Source: Camelus ferus (lineage: Eukaryota). Taken from it: a DNA stretch of 64,000 bases. Below the pieces are notes generated by a model. That model searched no databases and was not told the DNA's origin. It saw only the letters and a program-made list of their open reading frames with translations. A program made the position numbers and the translations under genes. The DNA lies in assembly GCF_009834535.1 (NCBI RefSeq), contig NC_045705.1:55614001-55678000 (forward strand), given 5' to 3'. Below, piece after piece: positions 10,318 through 63,369 of the stretch. Position 1 is the stretch's first letter. Every line of letters starts with the position of its first letter.

Positions 10318-11271
10318 ATGTCAGTGGCCATGTACAACCTGACTGGCTACAACACAGGTGCCTTCACCCTTCTGGGCATCCCTGGACTTGAGCAGTACCA
10401 CATCTGGATCAGCATCCCCTTCTGTTTTATCTATCTTGTGGCCATTGTGGGTAATAGCATCCTTCTCTACCTCATTACAGTGGAGCGCAGTCTTCATGCA
10501 CCCATGTGCTTTTTCCTTTCTGTGCTGGCTATTACTGATCTCATATTGTCTACCACCTGTGTCCCCAAAACTCTCAGCGTCTTCTGATTTGGTCCCCAGA
10601 AAATCAGTTTCCCTGGCTGTCTCACTCAATTATTCTTCCTGCATTACAGCTTTGTTCTAGACTTAGCTATACTGATGGCCATGGCCTTTGACCGCTACGT
10701 GGCCATCTGCTTACCCTTGAGATACACCACTATCCTGACCACCAGAACCACTGTCAAAATTGCTCTGGGAATCACCTTCAGAAGTTTCTGTGTTTTTGTC
10801 CAGTGCGTTTTCCTTGTAAATCGTCTGCCCTTCTGCAAGACACACAACATTCCCCACACATACTGTGAGCACATAGGTGTTGCCCGGCTTGCCTGTGCTG
10901 ATATCTCCATCAATATCTGGTATGGGTTTTGTGTTCCAATCATGACGGTGATTATAGATGTGATTCTAATTGCTGTCTCGTACACTCTCATCCTCTGTGC
11001 TGTCTTTCGCCTCCCCTCCCGAGATGCTCGCCAGAAGGCCCTGGGCACCTGTGGGTCCCATGTCTGTGTCATCCTTATATTCTATATACCAGCTTTCTTT
11101 TCCATCCTTGCACATCGCTTTGGACATAATGTCCCTCGTACCTTTCACATTATGTTTGCCAACCTCTATGTTATCATCCCACCTGCACTCAACCCTATTG
11201 TCTATGGGGTCAAGACCAAGCAGATCCGAGACAAAATCATTCTTCTCCTGTTTCCTAAGGGGTCCCACTGA
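10318..11271 (+). pseudogene. OR52H2P: Olfactory receptor OR52H subfamily (OR52H2-like), single in-frame nonsense
   Basis: One reading frame with OR52 motifs [58 protein letters not shown]>TGA (Trp90) at 10585-10587 is the only frame lesion. Name from synteny. Confidence 0.85.
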
Positions 11272-29864: not shown

Positions 29865-30882
29865 ATGGGACCAGGCCCTGCACTGCCTGCTTTCAACCAG
29901 ACTGTGCTCATCCCTGGGCCTGGGCCTTTTGTCCTGCTCAGGGTACCGGGAATGGAGGCCTTGCATGCCTGGCTTTCTGTGCCCATGTGTCTGCTGTACG
30001 TGGCAGCTCTGGCAGGGAATGCCCTTCTCCTGGGGCTGGTAGCAGCTGACAAGGCACTTCAGGCCCCCATGTACCAATTGTTGGGGCTTCTGGCCACCGC
30101 TGACTGGGTTCTGGCCACAACCACAGTGCCCAAAGCCCTGGCTGTGCTCTGGGGCCTGTCGGGAGAGATCTCCTTCAGGGCCTGCCTAGCCCGGCTCTTT
30201 GTTGCCCACGTGGCCTTCATTGCCGAGTCTTCGGTGCTGCTGGCCATGGCCGTGGATCGCTACGTGGCCATCTGCCAGCCTCTGTGCTACGGTGCGTTAC
30301 TGACCCAGTGCGTGGCAGGCATTGTGGCTGCAGCTGCGGTGACCCATGGTGCCCGTGTCATGGCCCCCACTGTGGCCTTGCTCTGGAGACTGCCTTACTG
30401 TGGGCATCGGGCCCTGCCCCACACCTACTGTGAGCACATGGGCGTGGCTCGGTTGGCATGTGGCAACATGAGCCCCAGCGTCTGGTATGGACTGGCCACC
30501 ACACTGCTCTCTCCAGCCCTGGACCTAGGGCTCATAGGTGCTTCCTATGCCCTCATTCTCCGGGCTGTGTCGCCTGCCATCCTGTGGTGCCCGCCGCAAG
30601 GCCATGGGCACCTGTGGGGCCCATGCCAGCGTCATCACTCTCTTCTGCACACCTGCCCTCTTCTCCTTTTTGTCTCACCGTTTCAGCCACCACATGGTGC
30701 CCAGCCATATCCACATCCTGCTGGCCAACCTCTACGTGGTGGTGCCCCCAGCTCTCAATCCCGTGGTCTATGGAGTGCGGACCCAACAGATTGCTGAGAG
30801 GCTCAGACGCTGGCTTCAGCTCTGCTGGGCGGGAACCCTGAGGGATGTGGGCCCTGAGAGGGCCTCCCACAGGAATGAGTGA
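29865..30882 (+). pseudogene. OR52V1P: Olfactory receptor OR52V1-like, frameshifted
   Basis: MAVDRYVAIC and HTYCEHMGVARLAC in frame 1; KAMGTCGAH and [16 protein letters not shown] in the next frame; 2-bp loss at about 30570 (gct gtg t|cgc ctg). Acceptor ttccctgcag ends at 29839. Name from synteny between OR52H1 and OLFM5P. Confidence 0.8.
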
Positions 30883-37564: not shown

Positions 37565-37587
37565 CTGTGAAGCTTGAGTTGACATCA
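37565..37587 (+). promoter_or_regulatory. Tandem CRE-like element upstream of UBQLNL
   Basis: ctg-TGAAGCTT-gagt-TGACATCA; same spacing as the elements at 43987 and 51405. Confidence 0.5.
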
Positions 37588-37927
37588 CAATATCCCTTTT
37601 CTGAAGAGGGTATGCTTTTGGTGGGTGGGGCAGGGGAGGGGAGACCCTGGGATGGGCCATCACCACTTAGCCTACCTTATATCAAGTATGAATCAGTAGC
37701 CACGCCAGGCCTCAGCTGGGCCACATCTGGAGAACTGGGGTGGGGGTACAACATCGTAAAATACCTGGCCTCAGTCTGGTCACTCATCCCTTTCGGGGCA
37801 ACAAGGAAACCAGCCTGTGGACCAAGAACACAACACCAGAGACGGAGGCCAGCAGAAGTATTTGTCTGCCCTCACCCCTCTGCCCCTGCTCCTGCTTCCA
37901 CCTGCTCCCCATCTGCCACGAAGGTCC

Positions 37928-39721
37928 ATGCCGCACATCATCTCTCGAACACCCAGGATGGCCCAGGGCGGGCGTCCTTCATGTCTGCCTGCAGGCAAGA
38001 ACACCGCTTCGAGTGTCACTCGAGTGATAGTGAAGACACCAGGCAAGCAGGAAGACTTTATGATAGCTGATGACACCTCGGTGAGGCAGTTCAAGGAGAA
38101 GCTATCGGCTCACTTTAAATGCCAAGTGGACCAACTCGTGCTGGTCTTCATGGGCCGCCTTCTCAAAGACCATGACATACTGAGCCAGAGGGGCATCCTG
38201 GATGGCCACACCATCCACTTGGTCATCAAGTCCAAACACAGCTCCAGATCCCTAGCCCATTCCTCCCGGAAACCGTCGACCGATGAGCCCTGCCACCAGG
38301 ACAAAAACACCAAAGGAAACAGCAGTGGGGTACACCAACCTGCCGGTGCGAATCACAGTCCAGTGGAATCAGCTGTATCCGCAGAGCCTGGTGTGCCCAG
38401 GATGCATACCCAGGGCCTGGAAGTGCTCAGTCTGGAGCGCATAGCACAGATACTGGAGAATCCTGGCATCCAGCAGCTTCTGTCTAACACAGACTTCATG
38501 AGACGGTTGATCTCAGAACACCCAGACATGCAACAGTTGATGCAGCAGAACCCAGAGGTCTCACACATCTTTGACGATTCTGATGTCCTATGGCAGACTC
38601 TGGAGCTGGCCAGGAATCTTGCCGTGATTCAGGAGATATTGCAGATCCAGCAACCTGCACAGAATCTCGAACATCCATCGGACCCACAGTCACATGTGGG
38701 CTCAGAGACCACCCGAGGTGAAGACAAGGCCCTGAGTCAGAACTCCGCTGATTTCAATGACCAAATGCTCAGTAGCTCACATGATCCATTTGGGGGCAAC
38801 CTTTTCACAGCTCTCCTGGGAGGACAAGTGCCAGAGCCGGTCCAGTCCTCACCCCCATCTCCACCACCACCGCAGGAGTGGCAGGAACAGCTCCCACAGC
38901 TCCCTACAGCCCGAGTCATCTACGCCAGCTCTCGTGATTTATCTTCAACCGCCTCAGCCAGTGCTACCCCCAGCAAGGCAAACCAGACTTCCAGGGCCAA
39001 TACTGCCGCCAGCTCCACCTACGGCTGGAGTCATACTTGTGACGTTGAGCAGCTAACTGGGTCACCAGCCCTACCCAGCATAGAGCTCACCCAGCAGCCC
39101 CAGGCAGAAGACAAAGATGCCACCACCTCTCTAGACAGCTCTGATCAGAAATTAGAGGATGACCTCCGGCTGCTGGATGAGCAGACTGGCTCCCAGATCG
39201 CCGGAAGCATGACGCAGGTGCTGTTGAACAACCCCTCCCTGGCCGCCCAGATGATGCTGTGCATGAGTATGCCCCAGCTGAGTGAGCAGTGGAGGCAGCA
39301 GCTGCCCGCCCTTCCGCAGCAGACACAGCTTTCTGATATGCTTACAGCCCTAGCCAACCCTAAAACGTCACAAGCGATCCTGCAGATCGAGCAGGGCCTG
39401 CAGCTGTTGGCCACCGAGGCTCCCGTTCTTCTACCTTGGGTTGCTCCCTACCTATGGGGCCTGGGCTGGCTTCCTGCACCCAGCTGCAGCTACCCTGACA
39501 CAGTGCCCGGGGCCTGGGATGTGCCAGATATGGAGGAGCCTAAAGGGCCCGAGTCCTGCCACAAGTCTGGAACGGTCCTGCAGAGTCTACAATCCCGAGA
39601 TGGAGACCCTTCCCACCTCCTGCAAGCCCCTGAGATTCGTTTCAGCAAGCAGATGGAATCTCTGCACGCCATGGGGTTCGGGAATCACCAAGCCAACTTA
39701 CAGGCCCTCATTGCCACCTGA
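37928..39721 (+). CDS. UBQLNL: Ubiquilin-like protein, 597 aa, C-terminal UBA truncated by a frameshift
   Basis: MPHIISRTPRMAQGG...RVIVKTPGKQEDF...QLVLVFMGRLLKDHD matches recalled human UBQLNL (MWHAISRTSRMSQSG...); UBL, STI1-like and M regions; UBA MGF motif, then TGA at 39719-39721. The ORF-track start at 37817 is GTG; the conserved ATG is at 37928. Confidence 0.92.
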   Translation: MPHIISRTPRMAQGGRPSCLPAGKNTASSVTRVIVKTPGKQEDFMIADDTSVRQFKEKLSAHFKCQVDQLVLVFMGRLLKDHDILSQRGILDGHTIHLVIKSKHSSRSLAHSSRKPSTDEPCHQDKNTKGNSSGVHQPAGANHSPVESAVSAEPGVPRMHTQGLEVLSLERIAQILENPGIQQLLSNTDFMRRLISEHPDMQQLMQQNPEVSHIFDDSDVLWQTLELARNLAVIQEILQIQQPAQNLEHPSDPQSHVGSETTRGEDKALSQNSADFNDQMLSSSHDPFGGNLFTALLGGQVPEPVQSSPPSPPPPQEWQEQLPQLPTARVIYASSRDLSSTASASATPSKANQTSRANTAASSTYGWSHTCDVEQLTGSPALPSIELTQQPQAEDKDATTSLDSSDQKLEDDLRLLDEQTGSQIAGSMTQVLLNNPSLAAQMMLCMSMPQLSEQWRQQLPALPQQTQLSDMLTALANPKTSQAILQIEQGLQLLATEAPVLLPWVAPYLWGLGWLPAPSCSYPDTVPGAWDVPDMEEPKGPESCHKSGTVLQSLQSRDGDPSHLLQAPEIRFSKQMESLHAMGFGNHQANLQALIAT

Positions 39722-39945
39722 GGGAGACACCAGCGCAGCCGTCCATAAGCTCAGGAGATCTCAGGGATCCTAACCACTGTGCCCACCCGTTTGCTGGTTA
39801 CCTGAATGCTGACCCATTTGACTTCCTCATCTCTGCCTTTTCCGTCTCTTCTGATGCTTCCAGCTAGGAGAAGTCCTGGAATAGGAGAAACCAAACAATG
39901 CTTTCTCTGCTGAAAAGACCACTGGCCATGGCTGAAAGATCTGTC

Positions 39946-39951
39946 AATAAA
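39946..39951 (+). terminator. Polyadenylation signal of UBQLNL
   Basis: AATAAA about 225 nt after the stop codon. Confidence 0.65.
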
Positions 39952-40019
39952 ATGGCTACATCAACTTACCTCCATCTGAGGTTTGGCTTACTTTTTTGCA
40001 AAAAAGGCAACTGTCTATG

Positions 40020-40400
40020 TGCGATAGACACCTACATCACCTGCCTCACCTATCATGCAGGCATACATACACATACATGTTCATACATGCATGCCGTACA
40101 TAGTACATGCATGAACACACACATAGCACATGCATGTATTCATAGAGAGATAGAGAATCATATCTGCACACATGGAAACACATGCACAGATATCATATGC
40201 TCACATACCCAAGAACACATGTATATAGCCTTGGACCGGTGTTCACATGTGGCTCACACAGCCAAAGATTCAAGTATATAGGCACATAAAGTCAACACAC
40301 CATACACACAGCCACGTACACACAGCCATGTACACACACGGCTGCACACAACTACGTAGAGACCCATAAACAGACCCACGTGTAGAGGAAGATAGTCAAA
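40020..40400. repeat. Degenerate (CA/TA/TG) alternating purine-pyrimidine low-complexity tract
   Basis: catacatacacatacatg...catgcatg...acacacagcc, read directly. Confidence 0.85.
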
Positions 40401-40849
40401 ACGTACCCATGAGACACTGCTACAGAGATAGACTCAGATATTTAGTCGTAAAGATTTCCTTGATTTCTCAAGTCCAGATTGTTCAGGTTTGAGTGTGGAA
40501 GAAGAATGAGCTGGTAGGCCAGAGTAGGAGGGATCCACATTCAGCCAGGTCTTGACAAGTATTTAACCACCAAGAGTCTCTTTATGAATTGTCGCTGTCA
40601 CGATCACAGGGCCCTGCGGGACTGCTGCTGTTCTGTCCAGCAGAGAAGGACGGAGCTGCTGCCACTCTCACTGCACAGCCCAGCCACGGCCACCCCGGGC
40701 CCCCACAGGGCACGGCGCCTTTCAAGAAGATCACATCCTTCCACACATCTGATGTTTGCAGCTTTGTTCCCTATAGTTAACCAAGGTCCTGTCACGCTAC
40801 CTCCTGCCTCACCAAAAGTATCTCAGCCGATTGGCAGGTAAACACTTTT

Positions 40850-41520
40850 AATTCAATGATTCAATGATTACTTAATAAGCTCTTGCCATAATAAGTCAAA
40901 TATTGTGTTAGGCTTTAAAAAATAGCAGTGACAAAACAAATATCCTTTATTTGTGGAGTTTATTCTCTTTCTTTTGTGGGAATACATCCAACTTAATGTA
41001 TAGCTACGTGATAGGTTACGTGATGATAAGTGATACAAAGACCGGTGAAGCAGGATAGACGATTCTAAGCAGGGAGTCATCAGGGAAGGCCTCTCTGAAA
41101 GGTGACAGCTGAGCAGAAGAGCTGCACATGCAATTCCCTGGGAGAAGTATGTTCCAGGCAGAGCAGGCTGCATGAGAGCAAAAGCCATGCGGTAAGAGTA
41201 GTCTTGTGTTTGAAGAGTAACAAGGGGGCTGTGCGGCTGGAGTAGGATGAATCAAAAGACAGAGGGAAAAGGAGGATTATCAGAAATCATGAAGAGCTTT
41301 GTAGGTCTGGTGAGGACTTTGGGTTTTATTATGAATGCAACAGAAAAATCACGGCTGGATTTTAGGCGAAGGGATGGAGTGATTCAATATATCAGTCTGG
41401 CTGCTGAGTGGGGAATAGACTGTGGTAGAAGGAAAAACTGGAATCAGGAAAACTAGTTAGAGCAGGTGGGAGGTGGCGGTGTCTGGGACTAGGGCAGGAG
41501 CAGCGGAGGTGAGGAAAAGC
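40850..41520 (-). mobile_element. L2 LINE 3' part
   Basis: attcaatgattacttaataagc...cagggaaggcctctctgaaaggtgacagctgagcagaag...tggattttaggcgaagggatggag. Confidence 0.8.
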
Positions 41521-42309
41521 ATTCAGATTCTGGACTGCGAAGAGAGCCCGCAGACATCCATGTGGTCCTGACAAGCCACCCATCCTCCAGCCCTGACATG
41601 AACATCGGCAAGACTGGAGGAGGCCCTGAGCTCCAAGTGCTTCAAGTAAACCTACTGCCAAAGACCCCTCACTCCGCTACCACCACCCACCAAAACAGTA
41701 CAGCTCCAGAAAGAAAATTATAGCTAAGAACAGAGTTTTCACCACCCGCCTCCATTAAGATGTCTCTCTGAATCCGATTAAGCCTTATATCCTCAGTTTA
41801 TATAAAAAGCCCAAATTCTTCGGATCATCATCCTGATTCTCCCTAGATGCTCTGAAAATCCCTCATCCGACTTATCAGTTCTCCAAACCATTGCGCCCCA
41901 CCATGTAGAGCTCAGTTTGGCAACAGTGAAACAAGCCCTTGTATCGGCAACCTTTCCCCTAAACGTCCCCTCGCCTTCCTGCTGTGACTGAAATGCGGCT
42001 GTCTGCCGAGGATGCCGCTTCTCCAGCAGTGCTGCCTGCTTCTTTCGTTCCCTGTGGACTCTGAAGTGGGGTGGGGGGGTCCTCCTGGGGCCTTCTATTG
42101 CTTCCTAACCGCAGTTTCCTAGCTTCAGTACTGCTCTGTCACAATTATTCTGGCGTAATATCCTCCTAGCAGACTCACCATGGTTCTCTCCGACTCTGCC
42201 TCTTCTCTGTGGAGGCAGAGGAAAGCAGACAACTGTGTTGACTAGTCTTATTTAACTTTATTACCAAAGCCTTCATTGTTCTGTTTGTGTTTCTTACTGC
42301 ATTTTCCTA

Positions 42310-42485
42310 TGCTAACTTTTTTCACCAAAAACCTGTGTTGAAACGCAGGTTTTTGAGCTTCATTCCAAAGGTTTCTGATTCTGCAGGTCTAGGGTAGGGC
42401 CCCTAAAATGTGCATTTCTACCAATTTCCAGGTGATCCTGATGCTGTCTGTCTAGAGACCACGCTTGGAGATCCAAGGCCCTGGT
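42310..42485. mobile_element. MER5A-like hAT MITE
   Basis: ttctgattctgcaggtctagggtagggcccc...tgtgcatttctaccaatttccaggtgatcctgatgctg...gaccacgcttggag. Confidence 0.8.
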
Positions 42486-42499
42486 CAATTCACTACCTT

Positions 42500-43500
42500 A
42501 CATTTTTGAGATGATCATTACATGTCTTCTCTGCTCTTCTCAAACCCTCAACATCCTTTTATCTATTCTGTCTCAGGTGATATTTTGCTTATTCCAACAA
42601 GATGGCAAAAAAGTGACTTTCACCCATGTCTGCCACTAAATCAACCACCTAACTTGCCTCTGTACCCATATACTCGGCCCCGCCTCCTGTTACAATGAAC
42701 ACACTGACCATGCTCCCAAATCAAGCTCTTCACTTGGGCACTTGATTCCAGTCCTTCTATCTTCTCAGCAGCTACTCTTGCCACTGTTTTGTGTTTTTCT
42801 CACATCACTGTGTTCTTCCTCCCTGGATTGTTCCCATCCGAATAAAACCACGTTGTAATGGTCTCATCTTAAGGAAAACAAAACAAAAACCCTTTATTCC
42901 GTATTTCCACACAGCCATCACTAACATTTCCAATACTCTTATTGGATCCACTTCTTCCTTTCCAACCCATTTACTTTTAAACCCACTCCAGTCAGGTTTT
43001 CTGCCCTCACCACCCGTCCAGCCTCAGTCTCATCGTGCTCTCCAGTCTAACTGGTCTCTCTCGTTCAAATCCAGTGGCCAATTCTCAGTGTTCATTTTAC
43101 TGACCTACCAGCACAATTTGCCACAGTTGGTTACTCTCTCCCCTTCTGAAATTCTTCTCCTTCTTCATTTGGATTCTTTCCCTCTCATTTATCTTCCTGA
43201 CAATGTTTTACTTGCTCTCAACTTCCTTTGCTGAATTCATCTGATGAACCTTCCAGACTTCTAAATATTGTACTGCCTATGGCTCAGTCTTCGTACCCCT
43301 ATCCTTTCACTGTACTCACTAATCTCACGATTCTAAATACTCTATCAATGCTGATGAAGTCTAGACTGACAATACTGGACTTCCTACATTTCCATTTGGA
43401 TATGAAATAGACATCTCAAATATATGTAAAACTGAACTCTTAATTTTATGTTTAACAACATTATTCCCCGGTGATTTTTACCTCAATAAATAGCCAATTC
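42500..43500 (+). mobile_element. L2 LINE fragment
   Basis: Pyrimidine-rich L2 sense pattern (ccactccagtcaggttttctgccc...aaatccagtggccaattctcagtg...atagacatctcaaat). Confidence 0.75.
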
Positions 43501-43784
43501 ATTCTTTGGCATTTTCTGGGAATAACAACAATGAAAATAAAAAGTAAAAGAAAAAGTTTATTCTATCCTTAACCTCTCTCTCATATCCTGGATCCCACCC
43601 ATCAGAAAATCAAGACGTTGAAATAGATATAAAGAATTCATGGCTGATGTTGAGTCAGAGAGAAGATAGAGGCATAAGATGCCAGGAAGAAGAAGCTCAA
43701 CCGAAGAGCAGCTGAGTTTGGGTCTTGATGGGGACACAAGGGATGAAGGACCCTTTCCTAGTTGTCCAGTCCCAATGTGAGTCT

Positions 43785-43812
43785 CCACATACCACATACC
43801 ACATACCACATA
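43785..43812 (+). repeat. (CCACATA)4 heptamer tandem repeat
   Basis: Four perfect units, read directly. Confidence 0.9.
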
Positions 43813-43986
43813 CCAGGTTGTGTGAAAACAGAACTCTCGGCTTGAGAAGGAATAGTCAGCCCAGACTCCTCACTATGAAGAAGGCAATTGAGATAAAGGA
43901 AGGAGAAGAGTTGCAGGGTCAGGGGAGATGAAGTCAGCAGGGATCCAGAGCACCTTGGAGAAGTCTCAGGAATCCATTGTGTGAGG

Positions 43987-44009
43987 CTGTGATGTCAATG
44001 CTGAGGTCA
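43987..44009 (+). promoter_or_regulatory. Tandem CRE-like element upstream of UBQLN3
   Basis: ctg-TGATGTCA-atgc-TGAGGTCA. Confidence 0.6.
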
Positions 44010-44125
44010 CAGGGGTGACCTGAAGGAGTGGGTTCTGGCTTAGAAGGCTTCAGGGGTGGCTGTTCAGCAAGATGAGGGCGGTTTGGAGCCCTGTATAAGA
44101 GGAAGGACGGGGCCACAGCTGACTG

Positions 44126-44422
44126 GTATGTATTCCCCAAACTGGGTCCTATTTGCTGCCCTTGCCCCTTCACTCATCAACTATAGACCTCTTTCCCAGG
44201 GCCTCAGGCCTCCCTCCCCTGGCCCTCAAACTCTCTCAAACCCAAAGTCCTCCCAAAGCATCCTATCCCAGGGACCTCATAGCCCCTTCCATGTGGACCC
44301 TCCAGTTCCCCCACCCTGAGGCCCCAGATCCTCTTCCTGTCCACCTTTCTTACTTTCACCACTGCCCAAAAGGATGATCGAGGTCTCTCATTCCCACCCC
44401 ACCCCCAGCTGTGTCCCCATAG
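44126..44422 (+). other. UBQLN3: Predicted UBQLN3 5'-UTR intron
   Basis: Donor CTG|GTATGT at 44126; pyrimidine-rich run ending ccccatag at 44422, 23 nt before the ATG; human UBQLN3 has two exons as I recall. Confidence 0.65.
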
Positions 44423-44445
44423 ACTTGGACCTCCTGCTGCCCACC

Positions 44446-46410
44446 ATGGCCAAAAGTGGAGAGGCCCTGCCTCAGGGCAGCCCAGCGCCGGTCCAGGACC
44501 CCCACCTCATCAAGGTGACAGTGAAGACGCCAAAGGACAAGGAGGATTTCTCAGTTACAGACACTTGCACCATCCAGCAGCTGAAGGAAGAGATATCACA
44601 GCGCTTTAAGGCCCACCCTGATCAGCTGATCCTAATCTTTGCTGGCAAAATCCTCAAGGACCCTGACTCACTGGCCCAGTGTGGGGTCCGAGATGGCCTC
44701 ACTGTTCACCTGGTCATCAAAATGCAGCGACGCACCATGGGCACGGAAAGCCCAGCTGCTTCAGTCCCTACCCCAGCCCCAAGCTCTGGATCACTCCCTC
44801 AGCCAAACTCCATTTACCCAACAGATGGGCCACCCACCTTTAGCTTAGGTGTCCTCACTGGCCTCAGTGGGCTAGGCCTGACCTCTGGTAGCTTTCCTGA
44901 CCAGCCAAGCTCACTGCTGTGGCAGCACGTGTCTGTGTCTGAATTTGTGGCTCAGATCATCGACGACCCCTTCATCCAGGGTCTGCTGTCCAACACAGGC
45001 CTGGTGCGCCAGCTGGTTCTTGACAACCCCCATATGCAGCAGCTGATCCAGCACAACCCTGAGATTGGGCATATTCTCAACAACCCTGAAATCATGCGGC
45101 AGACCTTGGAGTTTCTACGCAACCCTGCCATGATGCAAGAAATGATGCGGAGCCAGGACCGGGCACTCAGCAACCTGGAGAGCATCCCTGGTGGCTACAA
45201 TGTGCTCCGTACCATGTACACAGATATCATGGACCCTATGTTTAATGCAGTACAGGAGCAGTTTGGGGGCAATCCCTTTGCTACCTCCGTGGCTGCTAAT
45301 GCCAGCAGCAGCAGCCGCCAACCTTCAAGGACAGAGAACTGTGACCCTCTCCCCAACCCCTGGGCTTCCACATACACAGGGTCAGGCAGCAGGCGAGGCA
45401 GAAGGCCTGGGGACCTGAATGTATCTGAAATTAGAAATAGGTTTCCCAACATTCTAGGTAATATAGGGCTCAATGACTATTTCCAGCAATTACCCCAGGA
45501 CCCCCAGTCCCTGGGAACCTATCTGCAGGGGATTGCATCTACTTTCAGCCCAAGCCAAGATCTACCACCACCACCACCACCACCACCAGGAAGCCAAGTT
45601 CCTCCAACTTCCCCCTTAGGCCAGCCTCTCCCCAGGGAGTCAGTAGCAATCAAGGGAAAGTCGTCCTGCCCAGCATTCCTGAGATACCCCACAGAGAGCA
45701 GTACGAGAAAAGATGGAGGCCAAGGTGGCACAGGGAATGGCTCCACTGGCCACAGCACCAACATATCTGATCTTGTCTCTGGGCTGGGGAATGCTGCCAG
45801 CAGGGCCCCGTTGGTTCCTTCACCCCCTTCTCCCACAGCAGCTATGGCAGAATTCCCTGAGCACGCCTGGTTGCCGCCACCAGGTTATCCGAGATCTCTG
45901 AGGCCAGCCAGCATGAATCAGACCCCCCAGCTGCAAGACGAGATGTGCTGGCAGCTGCCGCTGCTGCTACACCTTCAGGCAGCCATGGCCAACCCTCGTG
46001 CCGTGCATGCCCTGCTGCAGATTGAGCAGGGTCTGCAGATCCTGGCTACTGAAGCACCTTGCCTCCTGCTCTGGTTCATGCCTTGCATCACAGGTCTGGG
46101 AAGCATGGCAGCAGGTACCGAGCCCAGAGAGGGTGCCCTCGTGCCTGAAGATTGCCCTCCAGCCCCAGCTCCTGAGGTTCCCTCAGCTCCAGGCTCTGTG
46201 GAGCTGGGCCTCCATTCCAGTCCCTTCCTCCAGATGTTGCAAGCCCTCACTGGCTCCCATCCCCAGCAGCGGCAGCCCGAGACTCACTTCCGGGTACAGC
46301 TTGAGCAACTGCGGGCCATGGGCTTTCTGAATCCTGAAGCCAATCTCCAGGCCCTCATTGCCACAGAGGGTGACGTGGATGCTGCTGTGGAGAAGCTGAG
46401 GCATTTGTAG
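44446..46410 (+). CDS. UBQLN3: Ubiquilin-3, 654 aa, intact
   Basis: Kozak ccaccATGg; [35 protein letters not shown] matches recalled human UBQLN3; ends in a complete UBA ([27 protein letters not shown]). The ORF-track ATG at 44374 lies in the predicted intron. Confidence 0.97.
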
Positions 46411-47259
46411 GAGGCCCTGGTCGTTCGGACCGTATCTTCTCCTCTGTGCACCTCTCCCCCCGTGTCCCGCTCCCTTACCTCCCCGACTCTTGAATGCAGC
46501 TGCACTATGAACCAAATTTACTATGATGCTCTTTGCTGTGGAGACAATGTTGTTCCAGAGTCAGTGAGGAGGAATGAGAGCCCGAACAGGGTGGGGGTGC
46601 CAGGAGAGACCCAACCGCCCCTGCCGCTGTACCATCGTGGGGCCCCAGTCTGAGCTCTGCTAATGCCTATCCTGAGATGCAATTACATCCAACCTCCAGC
46701 GTCATTTGCTGCCTGAGTCTGATTCTTTGTGGGTTATGAGAAAAAGGGAGGACACAGGAGAAGAGGCGGTGGTAAGAGCTGCCACTGCGTGGATACGAGG
46801 GCTTGGAGGGAAAACTGAAAGATTTGAAGTTAGAAGATTCAGAAGCACGGAGAACAGAGGAGGGTGAGCCGAGGTCTGCAGCTTTCCTGGTGTCCTTCCA
46901 AAGGTCCTCCAGATTTCATGTCCTGTAGGAGTTGTCACCAGCTACTCTGTGTTCTTTGGGGCTCTCTACCACTAGCCTGAGTAAAAAGTGGTAAAAATGA
47001 AGTAGGTAAAGATTTGAGAGGGGAGGGAAGAGAGTTCCAGCAGAAGAGCCCTTATGTACAAAGGCACGGAGGGAGGGTGTGCATGCCACACGGTACGTGC
47101 TCTCCACATCTCAGATGAACTTCTCATTTGCACTCAGGGATGCTTCCCAAAAGGTTTGAAAGATACTCCTCTAATATCTCTGCCATAAATACCTGCATGC
47201 ACTTTTTCCTGGATATTTTAGGGTTTCATTACTTATATTTACTTTTAAATAATAGTTAA

Positions 47260-47490
47260 CGTTATTAAAGGTTTCCTCTAGCCAGGCCCTGTTTTAAGCC
47301 CTTTACATCTGAATCCACATCAGTCCTTTAATGCGGGTAAGTATTATTATCCCTACTTTCACATGAGGAACACTGAGGCATAGGGAGAGAGGCAGTATGT
47401 CACTTAAAGTTATACAGCTCTTGTATATTGCAGGCAGGATTTAAAATTAGACAGTCAACTTCCAGAGTCTAGACTCTTAACCACCACACC
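47260..47490 (-). mobile_element. MIR SINE
   Basis: tattattatccctactttcacatgaggaacactgaggcatagggagag...cttccagagtctagactcttaaccacc. Confidence 0.85.
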
Positions 47491-48379
47491 AAATCAAGTT
47501 AACTAATGTTTTCATCCTTACCAATAGAAAGTGAACCCAGAAGAGTAAAGGAATTTTTCTTCCTCCCAGACCATCCTATTGCTGGACATTTAGGTAAGCG
47601 AAACATCTTAAACGCTGATGACAATAAATCATTGTCCAGGTGTTTCATTGAATCTTCTTTTCTCTTTGTTTCCACCTCCCTCCTTCCCACCTCCTTTTCC
47701 TCCTTCCTACATTTATTTTATTTAGTAACCTGCCGACAGTGGGGTTCTAGCAGCAAATAAGATAAGGTTCCTGTTCTCATGGAGCTTACAGTCTAGTGAA
47801 GGGAGACAGAAAAATAAAATGAGTGACTGGAGAAGAACTATGACAGAAAGATAAGTTCTATGCAGATAATGAAAACAGACCGATAAGAGAGTGAATGGTT
47901 GGGAAGACCTCTGGGAAGAGCTGGTTTGAATGGTTAAGAAGAGTGACCCTTGTAAAGACTAGGTGGTCAAGCGTTAAAGACTTAGGCCACAGTTAATGCG
48001 ATGACCTTAGGTGTGGGAAGGCGCCTGGCTGTTCCAGATACAGCAGGGGAGCCAGTGTGGCCAACTTTTGTAAGAAAGGGGAAACTCAACATCAGGAAGT
48101 CAAGGAGACTGGCGGGAATGTGACCATGGGAGGCTTTGTAGCTAGATACCGAGCTTGAATTTTATTCTAATGCTGATATTCCAAACATAGCCTTTGCTAC
48201 TCCCATCAGCAGCTCTTCTTAGGCTTAATTAAACAGACTCATTATTACAAGCCACCCTTAACACAAATCTACTCAGAGTATACAGGAAGGAAACTGCAGC
48301 TCACCAACTGGGCAGAATCAGGCATTTCTCATTGTCTGGGAGTCCTTGCAGCATAGCCACCCAAGAGTCATCTTCTCCC

Positions 48380-48507
48380 NNNNNNNNNNNNNNNNNNNNN
48401 NNNNNNNNNNNNNNNNNNNNNNNNNNNNNNNNNNNNNNNNNNNNNNNNNNNNNNNNNNNNNNNNNNNNNNNNNNNNNNNNNNNNNNNNNNNNNNNNNNNN
48501 NNNNNNN
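48380..48507. other. Assembly gap (128 N)
   Basis: N-run. Confidence 1.
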
Positions 48508-50906
48508 AGGAAAATTCTGACAAAAAACACTGAAACTGCACATGACAGCGATCGCTTCACACCGTTTGATGCATCTAGTGAAAGTGCAGCTAAGATGGAC
48601 AAACTTTAACCAGTCTCTGTGCAAAAGATGGAAATGCAATATATTTTCTAGAAATTAGATCTTAAATATAGTGAACTTCAGTTCAAACACATAAAGTCAG
48701 TGTTCTACTGCGTCTGGTTGGAGCCCTTAGCCTGACGGTGAGTTTCTGGATATGATGCTTTCTTCACCAGTGTGCTTGGAGCTGTCTTTGCTGTCTGCTG
48801 CTGAATATGTCCCTGGGGATTCAGTCAGCCCTGACAGACATGTCTGTTCTTCGCACCTCCCCATCCCGTTATGGACCTGACCACAGAATTTGTCAAAGAT
48901 TGGCCTTGCCTATGGTATGAACACAATCCTCAGTGGTTTAACAGATGTCTGCTCTGTGCCAGGTACCATGGGTGTCACTTTATAAACAAATTCTTCAGAA
49001 CAAATCTGTGAAGAACCACCATATTATAGATGATAAAGACCAGGCTTAAAAAGGGTAAGTGCTTGTCAAAGTTATGAAGTGGTGGCTGTGAGACTTAAAC
49101 CAGGGCTATTGGACCCTAGAGATGCCAAGCTCCCCTTTTTCTTTGTTAATAGTAAAGTTTAATTAAATAAATAGTAAGTTAATTATTTTACTTTACTTTA
49201 CAGTTATAAAAGGAGTATATGTACAGTATAAAATATTCAAATGATGCTAGCCCTTCAGGAGGGATGAAGTGTGGTTCTTGTAATGAAGAACTCGGTGGAC
49301 TGTGTGGACCGGACTCCCGCCTTGAGACACAAGTGTAGAAATGGTCTGGGAAGACTATCAGCTCGGGCAGCAGACGTTTAGACACCAATTGTAGAGCCTG
49401 TAGGGGAGGTGGTGAAGGGGTGGGTCACCTCAAAGACTATGAGGGGGAAAAAAATACCTGGAACCATGAGATATTCAAAGGTGATCACAGACAATCATTA
49501 TCTGGAATGTTCTTCAGTGCCTGCTACACATTAATGCACCAGCTAAGGAAAATTCAGAAACATTCATTTGGATATCTGATTCTGCTGAGGGCAACCCAAA
49601 TGGAATGCCCAATGGGAACTGATTCTGGCACTGATATCTGTGTAACAGAAGTTGTCCTGAGGCCCGGACATTACTAGGAAAGTCCCACTAGGCTGCTGGT
49701 TGCAACCAGCCACGAGGCTCACTCTGGGACATTTACTGGGACTGAAAATGTCTTTTGAACTCAGAAATTACAACTTATCAAGGTCTTGATACTGATTGGA
49801 CGTGGAAGAGAGTCAATTCAAACTAACTGAAATCAGGAATACATATTAATATCTAATCGACGAAGTAGTGTAGAAAGATCTAGATGTTCATGTTGCCCAC
49901 ATCTACCAGAATCCCCTAGAGGTGGCATTTTAGGCAACTGGATTCTAATTTTACAGTCTTTTGAAATCGTAGAATCAGAAAAAGGGGTCAGGTATATAAA
50001 TGGCAAAAGCCTAAACAACCCCATGTATCCATCTTCACAATAAAAAATATAATTGTTGGAGGGATTAGACAGACCTTACTCTTAGGCCTAACCTGCCTGG
50101 AGCAGTCAGCACCTTAGGGAGTCACTAGTAATCTGCTTTACATCAGAATATGTCCCCTCCCAGGTGATAATTCTCCTCCTCAAATATACCTTGTATCTAG
50201 TAATTGTTAAAGTCGTGAAGACCTAAGGTCAGCCTATTGCTTTCTCATTAATTTCTTTTGTCTCATCTTTGATCCTGTGGAAGCTGAGAGAGCACCTTTC
50301 CCCCCAAGTTCTTGGAGGACATGCTGCTGCTTTCATAGACTGTATGGATGGGTCACCCACCTGGTGGGTGTTAGAGATGCAAGCGGCCTCAAGATCCCAG
50401 TGATGCTGGATGGGCTAATTATACATATCTTTATTCCATTCATATAGAAACAACAACTTGAGACCTTGAACGAGGCATGGTTGGTATTCAGTAATTTAGT
50501 AGAAGACAGGTGACTAGAATTAGCACTTCCTAAGCTAGTTCTTAGACTAATACGTTTTCTCCTGAGCTATATTCATTTATCAAACTCAAGTGGTATGATT
50601 TTCAACCATGCAAGGGGCTAATGCAAAACATGGTTTTAGACAGGAACATTTAAATGTTTTGTTATTCAAATAAAATACTTTTTTCACTTTCAAAATTTAA
50701 TGCTCTTGAAATATATACATATCAACACTTTCAGAAAGCTAACTTTCCAATAGTAATCTTGGCTAAGGGTAATTGAACTATTTATTTTCCTATATAAACA
50801 GTGAAGTTTGTTTGAACATTTGAAGTCCAGTTAAAATGTCTCAGCTATTCTGACTGTAAATCAACAACTGTAATTGCTCTAGGTCCCATGATAATATCTC
50901 TTTGTT

Positions 50907-51040
50907 GGGGGGAGGGTACAGCTCAGTGGTAGAGTGCATGCTTAGCATGCATGAGGTCCTGGGTTCAATCCCTGGTACCTCCATTAAATAAATAGATAAA
51001 TAAATAAACCTAACTACCCCCCCCCAAATTGTAGAAACTA
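50907..51040 (+). mobile_element. Camelid tRNA-derived SINE (Vic-1 type)
   Basis: gggggagggtacagctcagtggtagagtgcatgcttagcatgcatgaggtcctgggttcaatccctggtacctcc with (AAAT)n tail. Confidence 0.92.
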
Positions 51041-51189
51041 TGTATATATATACCTTTGTGAATCAGAATGGTATATTGTAAACTGAACCCTAATATAAAC
51101 AAACTACATTATACAAGATATGCTTTCTTCTTAGGTTTTGTTAAAGTATCAGTTCTGTAGATGAATGGTTCCAACTTCACTAGTAAGGT

Positions 51190-51380
51190 AGGGCATCACT
51201 TCTCAAACTGTACTGGGCACGGGGACAATCTGAGGGTGCGCTAAAATGAAAATAACGATTCTGTACATCTGGGTTCCAGCCTGAGAGTCTACATTTGTAA
51301 CAAGCTCCCAGCTGAGGCATTACTAAAATCAAATCTCAAAGAAAGCCAACCTCTGGCAGGCGGTAGAGACCACTGCCCTT
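51190..51380. mobile_element. MER5-like hAT MITE remnant directly upstream of UBQLN5
   Basis: cttctcaaactgt...gattctgtacatctggg...ctacatttgtaacaagctccc...gagaccactgccct. Confidence 0.6.
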
Positions 51381-51404
51381 CCCCTAACCAGGTCTGCTTC
51401 TCAA

Positions 51405-51427
51405 CTGTGACTTCATTGCTGACATCA
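51405..51427 (+). promoter_or_regulatory. Tandem CRE-like element upstream of UBQLN5
   Basis: ctg-TGACTTCA-ttgc-TGACATCA. Confidence 0.6.
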
Positions 51428-51625
51428 TCTCCCCTAAGGCTGGCTCTAGAGAAGGGCAGTTGCCACCTCATGGGAGCCAGGTGGTGGCAGGGCTACACTG
51501 GAAGGCAGTGTCCACAGGACGTGGGTGAGAGGACATCATTGTACACCTACTGGTCCCTGCGTCCAGGTGTACTCGGTACTACATCTAGACTTCTTCAGAC
51601 TCCTGCATTCTGCTCTCGAGGAAAT

Positions 51626-53188
51626 ATGGCACAGGCTAGGGAAGAAGCAGGGGACAGTCAGCTGGTGTCTGGTCGGGAGCCACCATCACGCATCATCAGA
51701 GTGTCTCTCAAGACCCCACAGGACTGCCAGGAATTTATGCTGGCAGAGAACAGCAGCATCCACCACTTTAAGAAGCAGATCTCCAAACGCCTTCACTGTG
51801 ACACTGACAGACTGGTGCTCATCTTCACAGGAAAAATCCTCCGGGATCAAGACATACTGAGCCAGCGAGGCATCCTTGATGGCACTACGGTCCACTTGGT
51901 AGTGAGGACTCGTGTGAAAGGAACTCAGCCCGGTCCCGGTGCTCTGCCAGGCCCCACTGGACACTGTGCCCATCGTTCTGAACCATCCACCTCGGAGAGT
52001 GCTGGGGTGCTAGCCAGGCTGGGCCGGCTGGCCCAGGGCTCTCCTGATCTGGCAGACCTCCTCGGCCAGCTAGCTCAACTCCTGATGGTTGCGCCCGAGG
52101 CCGTGGTGCAGCTCTCGGAAGACCCTATGGTTCAAGGCCTGGTAAGTGAGAAACTAGCCAATGCCAGCCATGTTTCTGAATCCTCAAAGCCAGTACACAA
52201 ACCCGAGCTGGCTCTTAAGGTTCTGGAAAACTTGCAGAACCTGGCCCAGTCACCGGAACTCCTGCAGGCAGACAAGTGGGGACTGGAGGCCTTGAAGGCA
52301 GTGCCAGGTGGTGACAATGCCACGCATCCGGTCTGCTCTGATATCCAGCACCTCATGCTCTCCACTCTGGCCTCACTGGCTGCTTCCAAAGGCCATGGCC
52401 CAAGTTCAGAGCCCAGCAGAGGGGGCGCCAATCCTCACAGCAGTACTAACACAACCACCACCATCGTCCCCACAGCCGCTGCACCTGCCAGGCCACTGGC
52501 ACAGGAGGTCAGAGCAGGAGTCATTGCTCAAGTCAGGGGCATGGTCTCAAACCAGGCCAATTCAGGCTGCAGGACTGGGACGTCGGACTTAAATTCGGGC
52601 CAGGATCTTTCCTCCCAGGAGAGCCAACAGCCCATAGGGAAAGCCACACCAGCCAGTCAGCTGAGAACTTCACCTTCTGCCTTGTGCAGAGCTCTGCATG
52701 TCCTGCAGCAGAATCCAGCTCTGCTGCGCCAGCTGGTGACCGACAGCCCCCTGCGACACCATATGCCACTGCTTCCCATACTCACCAACCCACAGGCACT
52801 TCAGGCATTGATCCAGATAGAAAAGGGCCTGCAGATACTGTCCAGGGAGGTGCCTGGGTTGGGACCTTGTTTATGGGGTCCAGGTAGACCACATGGGGCT
52901 AGAGGAGCTCCTGAAACTAGGGGTGGAGGACAAGGTCACAGAGCAGACCCTGTGCAACCCACACTGGCCGTTCTTCAGCTCCTCCGTGCACTGGCCCATG
53001 CTTGCCCCCAGTCTACCCAGTCCTCCCTGCCCTCGTGCCCCCTCGCTGACAGCTGCTACCAGCAAGAACTGGAGCATCTGAAGGCCATGGGCTTTGCTAA
53101 TCGTGATGCCAATCTTCAGGCCCTGGTGGCCACAGGTGGAGACATCCATGCTGCCATTGAGAGGCTGCTGGGGGTATCAGAGGCCTAG
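51626..53188 (+). CDS. UBQLN5: Ubiquilin-5, 520 aa, intact
   Basis: Kozak aatATGg; UBL ([10 protein letters not shown]...[12 protein letters not shown]...GTTVHLVVR), M-domain [20 protein letters not shown], complete UBA ([31 protein letters not shown]). Third intronless ubiquilin, in the position of rodent Ubqln5. Confidence 0.85.
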
Positions 53189-59746: not shown

Positions 59747-60703
59747 TCATATTGAAATTTTCCCCAAGTGAAGCAGTCTTGAAAGTCGATTCCAAATCTC
59801 CTTGGTCCTCGCCCCATAGATGATGGGGTTGAGCACAGGAGGCACCAGCACATAGAGGTTAGCCAGAAAGATGTGCACATGCCTGGGGACTCGGTGTTGC
59901 CCAAAACGGTGGGTGAGGAAGGAGAAGAAGGCAGGAATGTAGAAGACCAGGATGACCCCGAGGTGTGAGCCACAGGTGCTCAGAGCCTTGCGCTGGGCAT
60001 CTTGGGATGGAAGACGAAAAACAGCATGGAGGATAAAGCCATAGGAGAGAGCAATGAGAATAGAATCTAAACCCATGGCCAGAAGGGCCACAGTCAGCCC
60101 ATAGACAATATTGACAGTGATGTTGGCACAGGCCAGTCGAGCAATGCCCATGTGCTCACAGTACGTGTGTGCCATGACACGGTGCTGACAGTAGGGCAGT
60201 CGCCTCAACAAGAAGATGAAGGGAGAGACAATGGCCACACTACGGAACATCCCAACAAGGCCAATTCTGCCTATGACGGTATGGTTGAGGATGGTTGTGT
60301 ATCTCAGGGGGTTGCAGATAGCCACATAGCGATCAAAGGCCATGGCAAGAAGAACCAAGGACTCTAGAGCATAGATAGAATGGACACAAAACATCTGGGC
60401 CAGGCATCTTCCAAAGGAAATCTCACCAGCTTGGAGCCACAAAATGGCCAACGTCTTGGGCACAGTGGTGGAGCTGAGAGCAAGGTCGGTGAGTGAGAGA
60501 AGGCAAAGGAAGAGGTACATGGGTGCGTGAAGGGCACTGTCTGTCACTATGACCAGGGTGAGGGCGGCATTCCCAGCCAGCGCTACCAGATACATGGCAC
60601 AGAAGGGGATGGAGATCCAGACGTGTGCCCACTCCAGCCCCGGGATCCCCGTCAGGAAGAGAGTGTCTGGGAGACTGCCATCACTGCTGTTGGAAACTGG
60701 CAT
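59747..60703 (-). CDS. OR52D1: Olfactory receptor 52D1, 318 aa, intact
   Basis: MPVSNSSDGSLPDTLFLTGIPG...[15 protein letters not shown]...HTYCEHMGIARLAC...KALSTCGSH...LLHLGKISI, near-identical to recalled human OR52D1. Acceptor ctcctgttacag on the - strand puts the exon start at 60753, so the ORF-track GTG at 60781 is intronic. Confidence 0.95.
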   Translation of the reverse strand: MPVSNSSDGSLPDTLFLTGIPGLEWAHVWISIPFCAMYLVALAGNAALTLVIVTDSALHAPMYLFLCLLSLTDLALSSTTVPKTLAILWLQAGEISFGRCLAQMFCVHSIYALESLVLLAMAFDRYVAICNPLRYTTILNHTVIGRIGLVGMFRSVAIVSPFIFLLRRLPYCQHRVMAHTYCEHMGIARLACANITVNIVYGLTVALLAMGLDSILIALSYGFILHAVFRLPSQDAQRKALSTCGSHLGVILVFYIPAFFSFLTHRFGQHRVPRHVHIFLANLYVLVPPVLNPIIYGARTKEIWNRLSRLLHLGKISI

Positions 60704-63369
60704 TCTGGATGGCAAATAGAGGGCCCTGTCTGAGGGGTGATGGTACTCCTGTCCTGTAACAGGAGAGATTGGTTCATTCACATAGCATGTCCTTTCCTTG
60801 AAATCATCTTCTGAGAAAGATTTTTATTGTTATTAACTTAATAATCTTAAAAGATCTCAAGGATGTATTGTACAACACTGACAATATTTTGTAATAACCA
60901 TTAAGTGGAAAGTAACCTTTAAAAATTGTCTAAGTATCTTTAATTTAAAAAATAAAATTCAAAAACAGAAATTTAAAAGATTACCACATATGATCCGTTT
61001 TTCCATCTGCCGTTTCCTTTACTCAGAATTCGTGTTTTGAGTTCTGTGTTTCAAGCACCAAGCTAAGAACTGAAGCATTTGCCCAGTCTAACTCTTCCAG
61101 GCTCATCTCCCACCACACTCTGCACCTCATTCACGTGTCTTTTGTCTGCATACAGCTAATGAAATTTTGTGACTCTTTTTTTAGTTTATGCTATTCCATT
61201 TGCCCAAGGAGCCACTTTTCACTTATTTTTTTCTCTCTAGTTTTTAAACATCTGAACAAGTGTCTCTGCCTTTCCTCTCTAATTTAGTTCTTAGTAGTCT
61301 TTATATTTTTCATTCATCCACTGTTTTTCAAAATCCTATTAAGCTGTCTTTATACAATTGCAATCTCCACACAACATGACTGTGGCTGTACCTAGAAAGT
61401 TTGACCAATATTCTCTGAAAGACTCAATCCTGATAACCCTTAGTAACATAGCACTGCCTTATGCCTTAATGCTGCAATGTTTTATTTACTTAGTCTATAT
61501 TTGTAAGGTTACTGCCTAAATGTACACCACATGGTTCGTTTCTGTATCTCACCTGGAGTGCCTGTAAGGAGGCTAGGCAGCCTGAGCACACTCAAATACC
61601 CCGTCACTGAGTATCTGCAGTATTTAGAGCACACCTGTGGGTACAGTGGAAGAACGCAAGAGAGACATTAGACATGCTAGTTGGGGAGCTGGGGAGGCAG
61701 CACTCCCAGCTATGGCAAAGCCAGCTCAAAGTCCTACATTCCCACTGGTATAACGGTTGCATGTAATGGCCAGATCAGAATGTCAAGTGCAGATAGAGGC
61801 AGATTGAGGAGGGAGTGGAATGTCTTAGAGTTCGCCAACAGTAGCCATCCTGGAAGAGAGAAGACTTTTTTCTGTTGCAGAGTGCTAGTATTATATACTT
61901 CTTCTCTCAGTAGCATTGTTTACCTAAAAGAGTCCTTTGTAGGAACACTGGGACCCTGAATGTTACTTCTGAGTCTGTCTCAAGAGTGTTGTACGACCTT
62001 GAGAATATCCCTTCCCTTCTCTGGGAAGTCTCAATTTATAAAAAAAAAAAAATCCTGAAATACTCATCTCAGATTTTCTACCTATTCACTATTTAGCATT
62101 GGATATGTCTCACGACCTTTTCTTTTTTATAAATTGAAAATGGAAACACCTGGCTTACTCTTTTTGTGGGTGAGAAAGAGTAAAGTATGTGGGATTAAAA
62201 AGTTTGGACACCAAAAATAATGTTCTCCCCATTTTTACAAGCTCTTGGTCCCATAGTACATATTGGAGTGATACAGGGTAGAGCAATTATTCTACCTCTG
62301 TCTTAGCAAAAGGAGATCCAAGTTCGTAGAAATAAACTGTTGTCATCTACATCACAAAGCATGTTAATGTCAGAACTGAAATTAGGTCTCAGAGCTCCTA
62401 ATTTAAAGTTCGGTGTTCTCCTCTCATTTAACCGTCCATTTATATGGGCAATACTTTAGTTCCTATCTTTCTTTTTCGAGGCACTCTAATACTAATACGT
62501 ACTGCTTCAATACCATTACTGATTACCTGGACTCCAAAGAGCCAGATAAAGTGGAAAGCCCTTCTTATCTGCTCAGAGACTTTCACAGACGGCCCCAGTG
62601 GCTAAAGGAAAGCAGCTGTGTGGTGGAGACCTTGGGGTTACTCCCATCTTCTCTTCCCCTCTTTATCCACAAAGAACAATTTCAAAAGGCCATTGTAAGG
62701 AAGCTGCTACTCTGTGAGCATCTGTGGATGTGAGGACCAGAAGGATTATGTATAAGCAGGACTGCTCTCCAAGGGAAATCACAGGAAAGAAGACATTGTA
62801 CAGCAGCCCCAGTCTGGGTGGTATAGGGGAATCTTCCCAAATTTGTCTCACTCAGCCTTGTTTCTCGGTCACTATGATGGTTAAGTTTTTGAGGTCTCCC
62901 TCTAAGATCTAGACTTCAATAATTCAACTTCGAGTTCTTTCTCTGAACAGGTATTTTTGGGAAATACAATTTCAAGGACATACCTGTGTGATTCACATCC
63001 ATCCACAAGTTGAGTGCACCGAGGTTGGGGCTCTGTGATGAGTGTCACATACCAGTGCAAGGCTCTACGGGAGAGTGTGTGGTGGAACAGCAGGTTGTGC
63101 AGGTGATGTGTACCTGAATGTAATGGTTGTTCAGAGATATGGAAGTCTTTTTTGTGCAGATTGTATGGTTGTGATTTAAAGGATAGTAAGGTCTGAGTGT
63201 GTAATCTGAGATGTCTGATGTAGTCTCACTTTTGTGTGCTCATTGAGTGTCTTCAGCTTAGCTCCAGCTCCAGCATCCTCAGGTAGAGGGCTAGGTAAAT
63301 GTAGTTATTAATTCTCTGTGACACTCAGGTATGAAAACCCAGGGGGCCTGCTCTAGGGATGTCATAGAA

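Follow-up and report, generated by a model that had tools for sequence, protein, structure and literature searches.

The octamer TGAGGTCA is the 'CRE/NR' (cyclic AMP response element/nuclear receptor) site of the testis-specific mGPDH (GPD2) promoter, where it binds both the activator CREM-tau and the repressor GCNF, and a 26-nt fragment containing it directs spermatid-specific expression of a transgene (Rajkovic et al., NAR 2010, PMC2853129). Electrophoretic mobility shift assays (EMSA) of this site showed that 5G, 7C, and 8A are critical for CREM-tau binding, while position 4 tolerates change (PMC2853129). A second octamer, TGATGTCA/TGACATCA, is a functional TG/CA-variant CRE of lower affinity that is conserved between mammals and occurs chiefly outside CpG islands (Smith et al., BMC Evol Biol 2007, PMC1796609). 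The testis-specific promoters of mouse are described as enriched for CpG-free CRE-like 8-mers, TGAGGTCA and the 5'-extended TGTGAGGT among them (Yamashita et al., Gene 2008, as cited in PMC2853129 and PMC3091680). Here we examine octamers of both types in a 64,000-nt stretch of the Camelus ferus genome (NCBI RefSeq assembly GCF_009834535.1, contig NC_045705.1, positions 55,614,001 to 55,678,000, forward strand; hereafter the window). The window contains UBQLNL, UBQLN3, and UBQLN5, tandem spermatid-specific genes attributed to tandem duplication (Marin, BMC Evol Biol 2014, PMC4230246). An original prediction, made from the camel letters, held that all three genes share a 23-base upstream tandem of CRE-like octamers. 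Judged by its conservation, the string upstream of UBQLN3 and that upstream of UBQLN5 are a conserved promoter-proximal cis-regulatory element composed of two CpG-free CRE-type octamers.

Paired octamers upstream of UBQLN3 and UBQLN5

The UBQLN3 element of the camel (43987-44012 of the window, + strand) reads ctg-TGATGTCA-atgc-TGAGGTCA-cag, an imperfect 26-nt palindrome with its octamers at 43990-43997 and 44002-44009. The UBQLN5 element (51405-51427, + strand) reads ctg-TGACTTCA-ttgc-TGACATCA, with octamers at 51408-51415 and 51420-51427. The string upstream of UBQLNL (37565-37587, + strand), ctg-TGAAGCTT-gagt-TGACATCA, is CRE-like only at 37580-37587 (TGACATCA), and 37568-37575 (TGAAGCTT) appears to be what is left of a decayed first octamer. 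These strings precede the likely start codons by ~440 nt in UBQLN3, ~200 nt in UBQLN5, and ~340 nt in UBQLNL. The letters and coordinates of the three 23-base strings proved exact on re-reading. The predicted tandem pair is present upstream of UBQLN3 and UBQLN5, but not upstream of UBQLNL, whose first octamer departs from the TGANNTCA type in camel as well as in all four other eutherians examined.

The reported match of 18/23 between the UBQLN3 and UBQLN5 strings was counted correctly but lies within chance, as 15% of random pairs of 600-nt stretches from the window score at least 18/23 in direct orientation. One 8-mer common to three 400-nt stretches is not significant (P ~0.19). The exact pattern TGANNTCA-N4-TGANNTCA was found twice in the 64 kb, compared to 0.01 matches expected from shuffles, and both matches lie upstream of ubiquilins (UBQLN3 and UBQLN5). 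Three of the five TGACATCA/TGATGTCA sites in the window lie upstream of the three ubiquilin genes. A search with ctg plus the pair pattern, allowing up to two mismatches, recovered the UBQLN3 and UBQLN5 copies only, and not UBQLNL.

Twelve orthologous loci of ~22 kb each were then scanned for the exact pair pattern. One copy each was found in 9 of the 12 loci, always 200-540 nt upstream of a ubiquilin ATG and nowhere else in these loci, and allowing one mismatch added only 3 stray matches in the ~260 kb. The spacer is 4 nt long in every intact copy, while its letters vary. In UBQLN3 the pair is intact in camel, pig, rhino, mouse, and brushtail possum, and is one base off in sea lion; TGAGGTCA is present in all six species examined. 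The element reads ctg-TGATGTCA-gtgc-TGAGGTCA-cag in pig, rhino, and mouse, the spacer being atgc in camel and gcac in possum. The possum sequence matches that of rhino or mouse at 27/29 positions (E value 2e-7) and that of camel at 25/28, each time as the top local match within 1 kb upstream. In UBQLN5, rhino, monk seal, and armadillo share the eutherian consensus ctg-TGACCTCA-tcac-TGACATCA, from which the camel form departs at three places in a lineage-specific manner. One base is changed in mouse, and possum retains an intact pair, TGACCTCA-ttac-TGAGGTCA. The reverse complement of TGAGGTCA is found in UBQLN5 of rhino, seal, armadillo, mouse, and possum and was lost in camel UBQLN5, which has TGACTTCA.

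Upstream conservation was also scored in sliding 20-nt windows across 650 nt, giving 634 windows, among which the UBQLN5 element ranked 3/634 and the UBQLN3 element 11/634. Conservation in orthologous promoters had been the original prediction's own test of the element, and it holds across eutherians and into a marsupial in the case of UBQLN3 and UBQLN5, and partially in that of UBQLNL. The split between marsupials and eutherians is estimated at ~160 million years or more.

The relation between the two copies became apparent from other species. The UBQLN3 element, when reverse-complemented, agrees with the consensus UBQLN5 element at 22/23 positions in rhino and at 21/23 in mouse, and only 3 of 300 random pairs scored at least 21/23. 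This inverted relation is invisible from camel alone, because camel UBQLN3 and UBQLN5 score 18/23 in either orientation. The conserved octamers all read TGA-N-GTCA on the appropriate strand, where N is T, G, A, or, in echidna, C. Their identity and orientation drift, while their number and spacing are constant. This inverse relation argues for recognition of the element as double-stranded DNA.

It had further been proposed that the module was duplicated along with the genes. In keeping with this, the exact double pattern is found in all three paralogues of marsupials (possum UBQLN3, possum UBQLN5, and Antechinus UBQLNL), but the best match between UBQLN3 and UBQLN5 is inverted and has no flanking homology. 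Local alignments among the three paralogous upstream regions were no better than shuffles, with nothing significant beyond the element. Descent and convergence are for this reason not separable. Two tandem ubiquilins of echidna (L012:3567-5090 and L012:10001-11419) group with UBQLN3 (100/100) and UBQLN5 (100/99), respectively, in a protein tree. This grouping suggests that the ubiquilin duplications are older than the monotreme split, although the branches are long and the placement is unsure. No such pair was found in the sequence upstream of the echidna UBQLN3-like gene. In echidna, the UBQLN5-like gene has the canonical TGACGTCA 185 nt ahead of its ATG, and ATGTCA comes after it. This canonical site at a similar place lends indirect support to an origin of the pair by CpG deamination.

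A separate camel-specific string, AGGGGAGATGAAGTCAGCAGGGA (43921-43943), lies upstream of UBQLN3 and agrees at 20/23 positions with the second octamer of camel UBQLN5 and its flank when these are reverse-complemented. It is without conservation in other species, and the resemblance is likely due to chance.

The UBQLNL upstream region

The UBQLNL gene of the marsupial Antechinus has a full pair, TGAGGTCA-agga-TGATTTCA, at the aligned place and followed by the same CAAT. Because Antechinus has TGAGGTCA at this position, the eutherian first octamer, TGA(A/G)GCTT, looks like a decayed TGAGGTCA. BLAST of the Antechinus against the eutherian UBQLNL upstream sequences did not recover the octamer region; the best-kept blocks were 100-150 nt further downstream. 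Given the full pair in the marsupial gene, it is plausible that all three genes of the therian ancestor carried the double element.

The best-conserved blocks upstream of UBQLNL (37683-37745) are better conserved than the CRE-like octamer and are kept to the marsupial at up to 35/39 and 25/26 positions. They read CAAGTATGA(A/G)(T/C)CAGTAGCCA... and GGCCACATCTGGAGA(A/G)CTGGGGTGGG, contain an AP-1-like TGA(A/G)TCA and a CAGCTG box, and terminate at a GT donor-like site. A CAAT directly follows the UBQLNL octamer (37588-37593) in all six species, including Antechinus (TCACAAT). We take the ACAAT at this place to be a SOX-type core; SOX30 is a spermatid regulator.

Candidate factors and rival explanations

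The description of the octamers as CRE-like is borne out by the literature, since the TGATGTCA/TGACATCA and TGAGGTCA types are both published CpG-free CRE variants (PMC1796609, PMC2853129). Four of the six camel octamers are published functional CRE variants (TGATGTCA/TGACATCA or TGAGGTCA/TGACCTCA); TGACTTCA of UBQLN5 is one base from TGACCTCA, and TGAAGCTT of UBQLNL corresponds to no published variant. The positions critical for CREM-tau binding (5G, 7C, and 8A) are kept in five of the six camel octamers and in all conserved octamers of UBQLN3 and UBQLN5, with position 4 varying. They are not kept in TGAAGCTT of UBQLNL or in TGATTTCA of Antechinus. We infer that CREM binds at the elements. 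The spermatid expression stated for the three genes agrees with PMC4230246, and UBQLN3 is present in RNA runs from camel reproductive tissue.

The explanation we favor, at a probability of roughly 55%, is that the element is a double CRE-type site free of CpG, which CREM-tau is likely to activate and for whose TGAGGTCA octamer GCNF may compete. The 4-base spacer places the octamer centres 12 bp apart, so that a pair of dimeric factors would bind the helix on almost the same face. CREM-tau, a spermatid activator, would bind both octamers in round spermatids, and the GCNF repressor would compete at the TGAGGTCA 'CRE/NR' octamer later in spermiogenesis. As the octamers hold no CpG, binding would be indifferent to DNA methylation, in a CpG-poor promoter located inside an olfactory receptor cluster. 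The element would function in either orientation, the UBQLN5 copy being the inverse of the UBQLN3 copy. UBQLNL would have had the double site in the therian ancestor, of which eutherians, including camel, keep only the second octamer.

Several observations weigh against this explanation. The complete Table S4 of Kosir 2012, a list of genes that are both changed in the Crem knockout and bound by CREM, contains none of Ubqln3, Ubqlnl, and Ubqln5, nor are they among the rows examined of the Martianov 2010 tables of chromatin immunoprecipitation sequencing (ChIP-seq) results. TG/CA variants are low-affinity CREs (PMC1796609). The TGACATCA octamer of UBQLNL is retained in camel, in sea lion, and in mouse, where it precedes the ATG by 333 nt, and is broken by one base in pig (CGACATCA) and rhino (TGACATGA); it ranks 95/634 in conservation, no better than its flanks. 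The match at the echidna UBQLN5-like gene is positional only, and BLAST recovers nothing there. Finally, the UBQLN3 element may lie downstream of a start site. All 20 words sampled from 43880-44127 were found in six camel RNA runs, and a part of them in two more, so that some camel transcripts at least include the element; four runs with 31-71% of the UBQLN3 gene stretch are not listed as holding 43880-44127. Conservation upstream of UBQLN3 begins ~45 nt before the element in the comparison with mouse and at the element itself in that with possum. This onset near the element speaks against a main start site far upstream. As to other spermatid regulators, the three genes were not listed in the RFX2 target tables examined.

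The strongest competing explanation, which we consider possible though clearly less probable than CREM-tau, is that the element is a real conserved cis-element read by another factor, such as a nuclear receptor (GCNF, TR2/TR4), a TALE homeodomain protein, or another bZIP protein of the ATF/CREB3L4 type. AGGTCA is a nuclear-receptor half-site, GCNF binds TGAGGTCA, and the elements of UBQLN3 and eutherian UBQLN5 may be read as ATGTCA-N6-AGGTCA, that is, as the half-sites ATGTCA and AGGTCA. For the TALE homeodomain we presume that the TGTCA core of the TG-variant octamer would be the target, and the ATF/CREB3L4-type bZIP proteins are likewise presumptive candidates. The absence of the genes from the list of CREM-bound and Crem-dependent genes also speaks for a different reader. 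However, the arrangement expected for a nuclear receptor is not maintained. Possum UBQLN5 has the inverted arrangement TGACCT...AGGTCA, whereas eutherian UBQLN5 reads as a direct repeat; camel UBQLN5 has AAGTCA instead of AGGTCA, and the downstream TGACCT of UBQLN3 is lost in pig and rhino. Throughout, the octamers keep their palindromic frame and their 4-nt spacer. A nuclear-receptor direct repeat was rejected on these grounds, as the orientation of its half-sites is not conserved while the octamer frames are.

Narrower than the double CREM-tau site, and in our estimation unlikely, is a distinct composite in which the TG-variant and CRE/NR octamers form a heterotypic pair in a fixed 12-bp phase, preserved in either orientation since the marsupial-eutherian split, constituting a self-contained switch, turned on by CREM-tau and off by GCNF, that would be sufficient for round-spermatid expression. 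If true, this composite would be a general piece of spermatid promoter grammar, and the mGPDH probe shows the same TGAGGTCA-N4-TGACATTA layout.

The inclusion of the UBQLN3 element in RNA contigs would also suit a role in the transcript, whereby a hairpin in the 5' untranslated region (UTR) of UBQLN3 only, together with a conserved upstream open reading frame (ORF) of 8 codons, delays translation in spermatids, and the likeness to the other genes is secondary. As RNA, the UBQLN3 element folds into a hairpin of -13.8 kcal/mol in camel (z score -3.05) and -14.3 kcal/mol in possum (L009:9462-9490), with the variable spacer in the loop. We nonetheless regard this explanation as improbable. Folding is weak for the elements of UBQLN5 and UBQLNL (-2.8 to -4.1 kcal/mol), and a hairpin was rejected as a common feature of the three genes, being strong in UBQLN3 only. 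The UBQLN5 copy is reverse-complemented, which preserves the DNA site and not the RNA sequence. Moreover, the hairpin is a by-product of the motif, because any tandem of palindromic octamers can fold, and there is no covariation to test. Chance, or post-hoc picking of short CRE-like words, is the least credible source of the three-gene pattern: the 18/23 score, the shared 8-mer, and the first octamer of UBQLNL are what it can account for, but the exact double pattern stands at 200x expectation and the UBQLN3 and UBQLN5 pairs are conserved to marsupials among the top-ranked upstream windows, so that it is refuted for both genes and is a fair reading for the camel UBQLNL 'tandem' alone.

The upstream ORF that enters into the hairpin explanation (44072-44098, MRAVWSPV-stop) is preserved in the alignment with pig, sea lion, rhino, and mouse, which shows synonymous or conservative changes only, and its ATG is also present in possum. 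It lies in a conserved stretch (44010-44125, + strand) between the element and a conserved GT donor (44126-44127), which we take as a putative non-coding exon 1 of UBQLN3; the donor block is conserved to possum. TATAAG at 44094 was rejected as a TATA box, since pig and mouse do not conserve it and the resulting exon would be only a few bases long. The elements of all three genes lie ~90-155 nt upstream of conserved GT donor-like sites. In UBQLN5 (51515-51625) and UBQLNL (37737-37925) these donors are GAC/GTGGGTGAG and CTGGG/GTGGGG, respectively, and conserved pyrimidine-rich AG acceptors are found 4-5 nt ahead of the ubiquilin ATGs. A match of GGGCCACA(G/T)CTG ahead of the GT donors gave P ~0.12. 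The arrangement of donors and acceptors suggests a layout common to all three genes, with a non-coding exon 1, a short 5' UTR intron, and a coding exon.

The camel locus and comparison with known systems

Three ORFs on the + strand of the window encode ubiquilins: UBQLNL (37928-39721, 597 aa counted from the first ATG), UBQLN3 (44446-46410, 654 aa, with 100% identity to ubiquilin-3 of Camelus bactrianus), and UBQLN5 (51626-53188, 520 aa), with likely ATGs at 37928, 44446, and 51626. The UBQLNL ORF ends in ...LQALIAT-stop (39700-39721) and lacks a Pfam UBA match, in contrast to UBQLN3 and UBQLN5. As had been stated, the trio sits within an olfactory receptor cluster, with receptor ORFs on both sides, at 10675, 29865, and 59747. 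Those at 10675-11271 and 29865-30797 have partial profile matches (positions 86-278 and 1-195 of 280, respectively) and are probably olfactory receptor pseudogenes or fragments, and that at 59747-60781 is full length.

An assembly gap of 128 N (48380-48507) lies in the intergenic region between UBQLN3 and UBQLN5, 1.97 kb after the UBQLN3 stop (46410) and 2.9 kb ahead of the UBQLN5 element (51405), and overlaps none of the ORFs or elements. On either side of it, the genes have the order and strand seen in mouse. The distance between UBQLN3 and UBQLN5 is the sole uncertainty that the gap introduces. This intergenic region (46411-51625) is 5.2 kb plus the gap in camel, compared to more than 10 kb in pig, sea lion, and rhino and ~11 kb in mouse, and the gap may hide missing sequence.

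The shared element had been put forward as undescribed, and our literature search turned up no paper describing a promoter element of UBQLNL, UBQLN3, or UBQLN5. The study of the same three genes by Marin (PMC4230246) does not contain the word 'promoter'. That study dated the duplications that produced UBQLN3 and UBQLN5 as later than the monotreme split, whereas here, with the caveat of long branches, two echidna genes group with UBQLN3 and UBQLN5.

These results leave unaltered what is known of CRE-like control in testis. Spermatid-specific promoters are short and poorly conserved, with few elements defined, and here an element of 23-29 bases is fixed by conservation between marsupials and placentals. 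Conserved in two paralogues and with a relic in a third, it offers a small and precise target for the study of how post-meiotic genes are switched on. It bears on whether CREM-tau and GCNF share sites beyond the one promoter studied, as well as on how a testis cluster stays active within an olfactory receptor cluster. It also exemplifies site turnover under a fixed architecture, in which the identity and orientation of the octamers change and their number and spacing do not.

Of the described systems, the CRE/NR site of mGPDH (PMC2853129) shares with the ubiquilin elements an identical TGAGGTCA with TG immediately 5', the lack of CpG, and a spermatid-specific gene. The mGPDH EMSA probe furthermore has a second part, TGACATTA, 4 bases after TGAGGTCA, the same two-part layout as in the ubiquilin pair, although the relative orientation of the two octamers differs, and the 26-nt fragment sufficient for spermatid-specific expression ends within this second part. 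Unlike mGPDH, the ubiquilin pair consists of two full octamers conserved jointly in paralogues and in either orientation. The TG/CA-variant CREs (PMC1796609) have the TGATGTCA/TGACATCA octamer in common with the pair, but were described as single genome-wide sites in relation to CREB, and not as a fixed-spacing pair with a CRE/NR octamer or in testis promoters. The words of Yamashita et al., as given in PMC2853129 and PMC3091680, include TGAGGTCA and TGTGAGGT, and all first octamers here likewise follow TG. In contrast to the pair, however, that result concerned enrichment of single words, and the two citing texts mention neither a tandem arrangement nor ubiquilin genes. Compared to these systems, the kind of element is already known, and what is new is this instance of it and its paired, orientation-free conservation.

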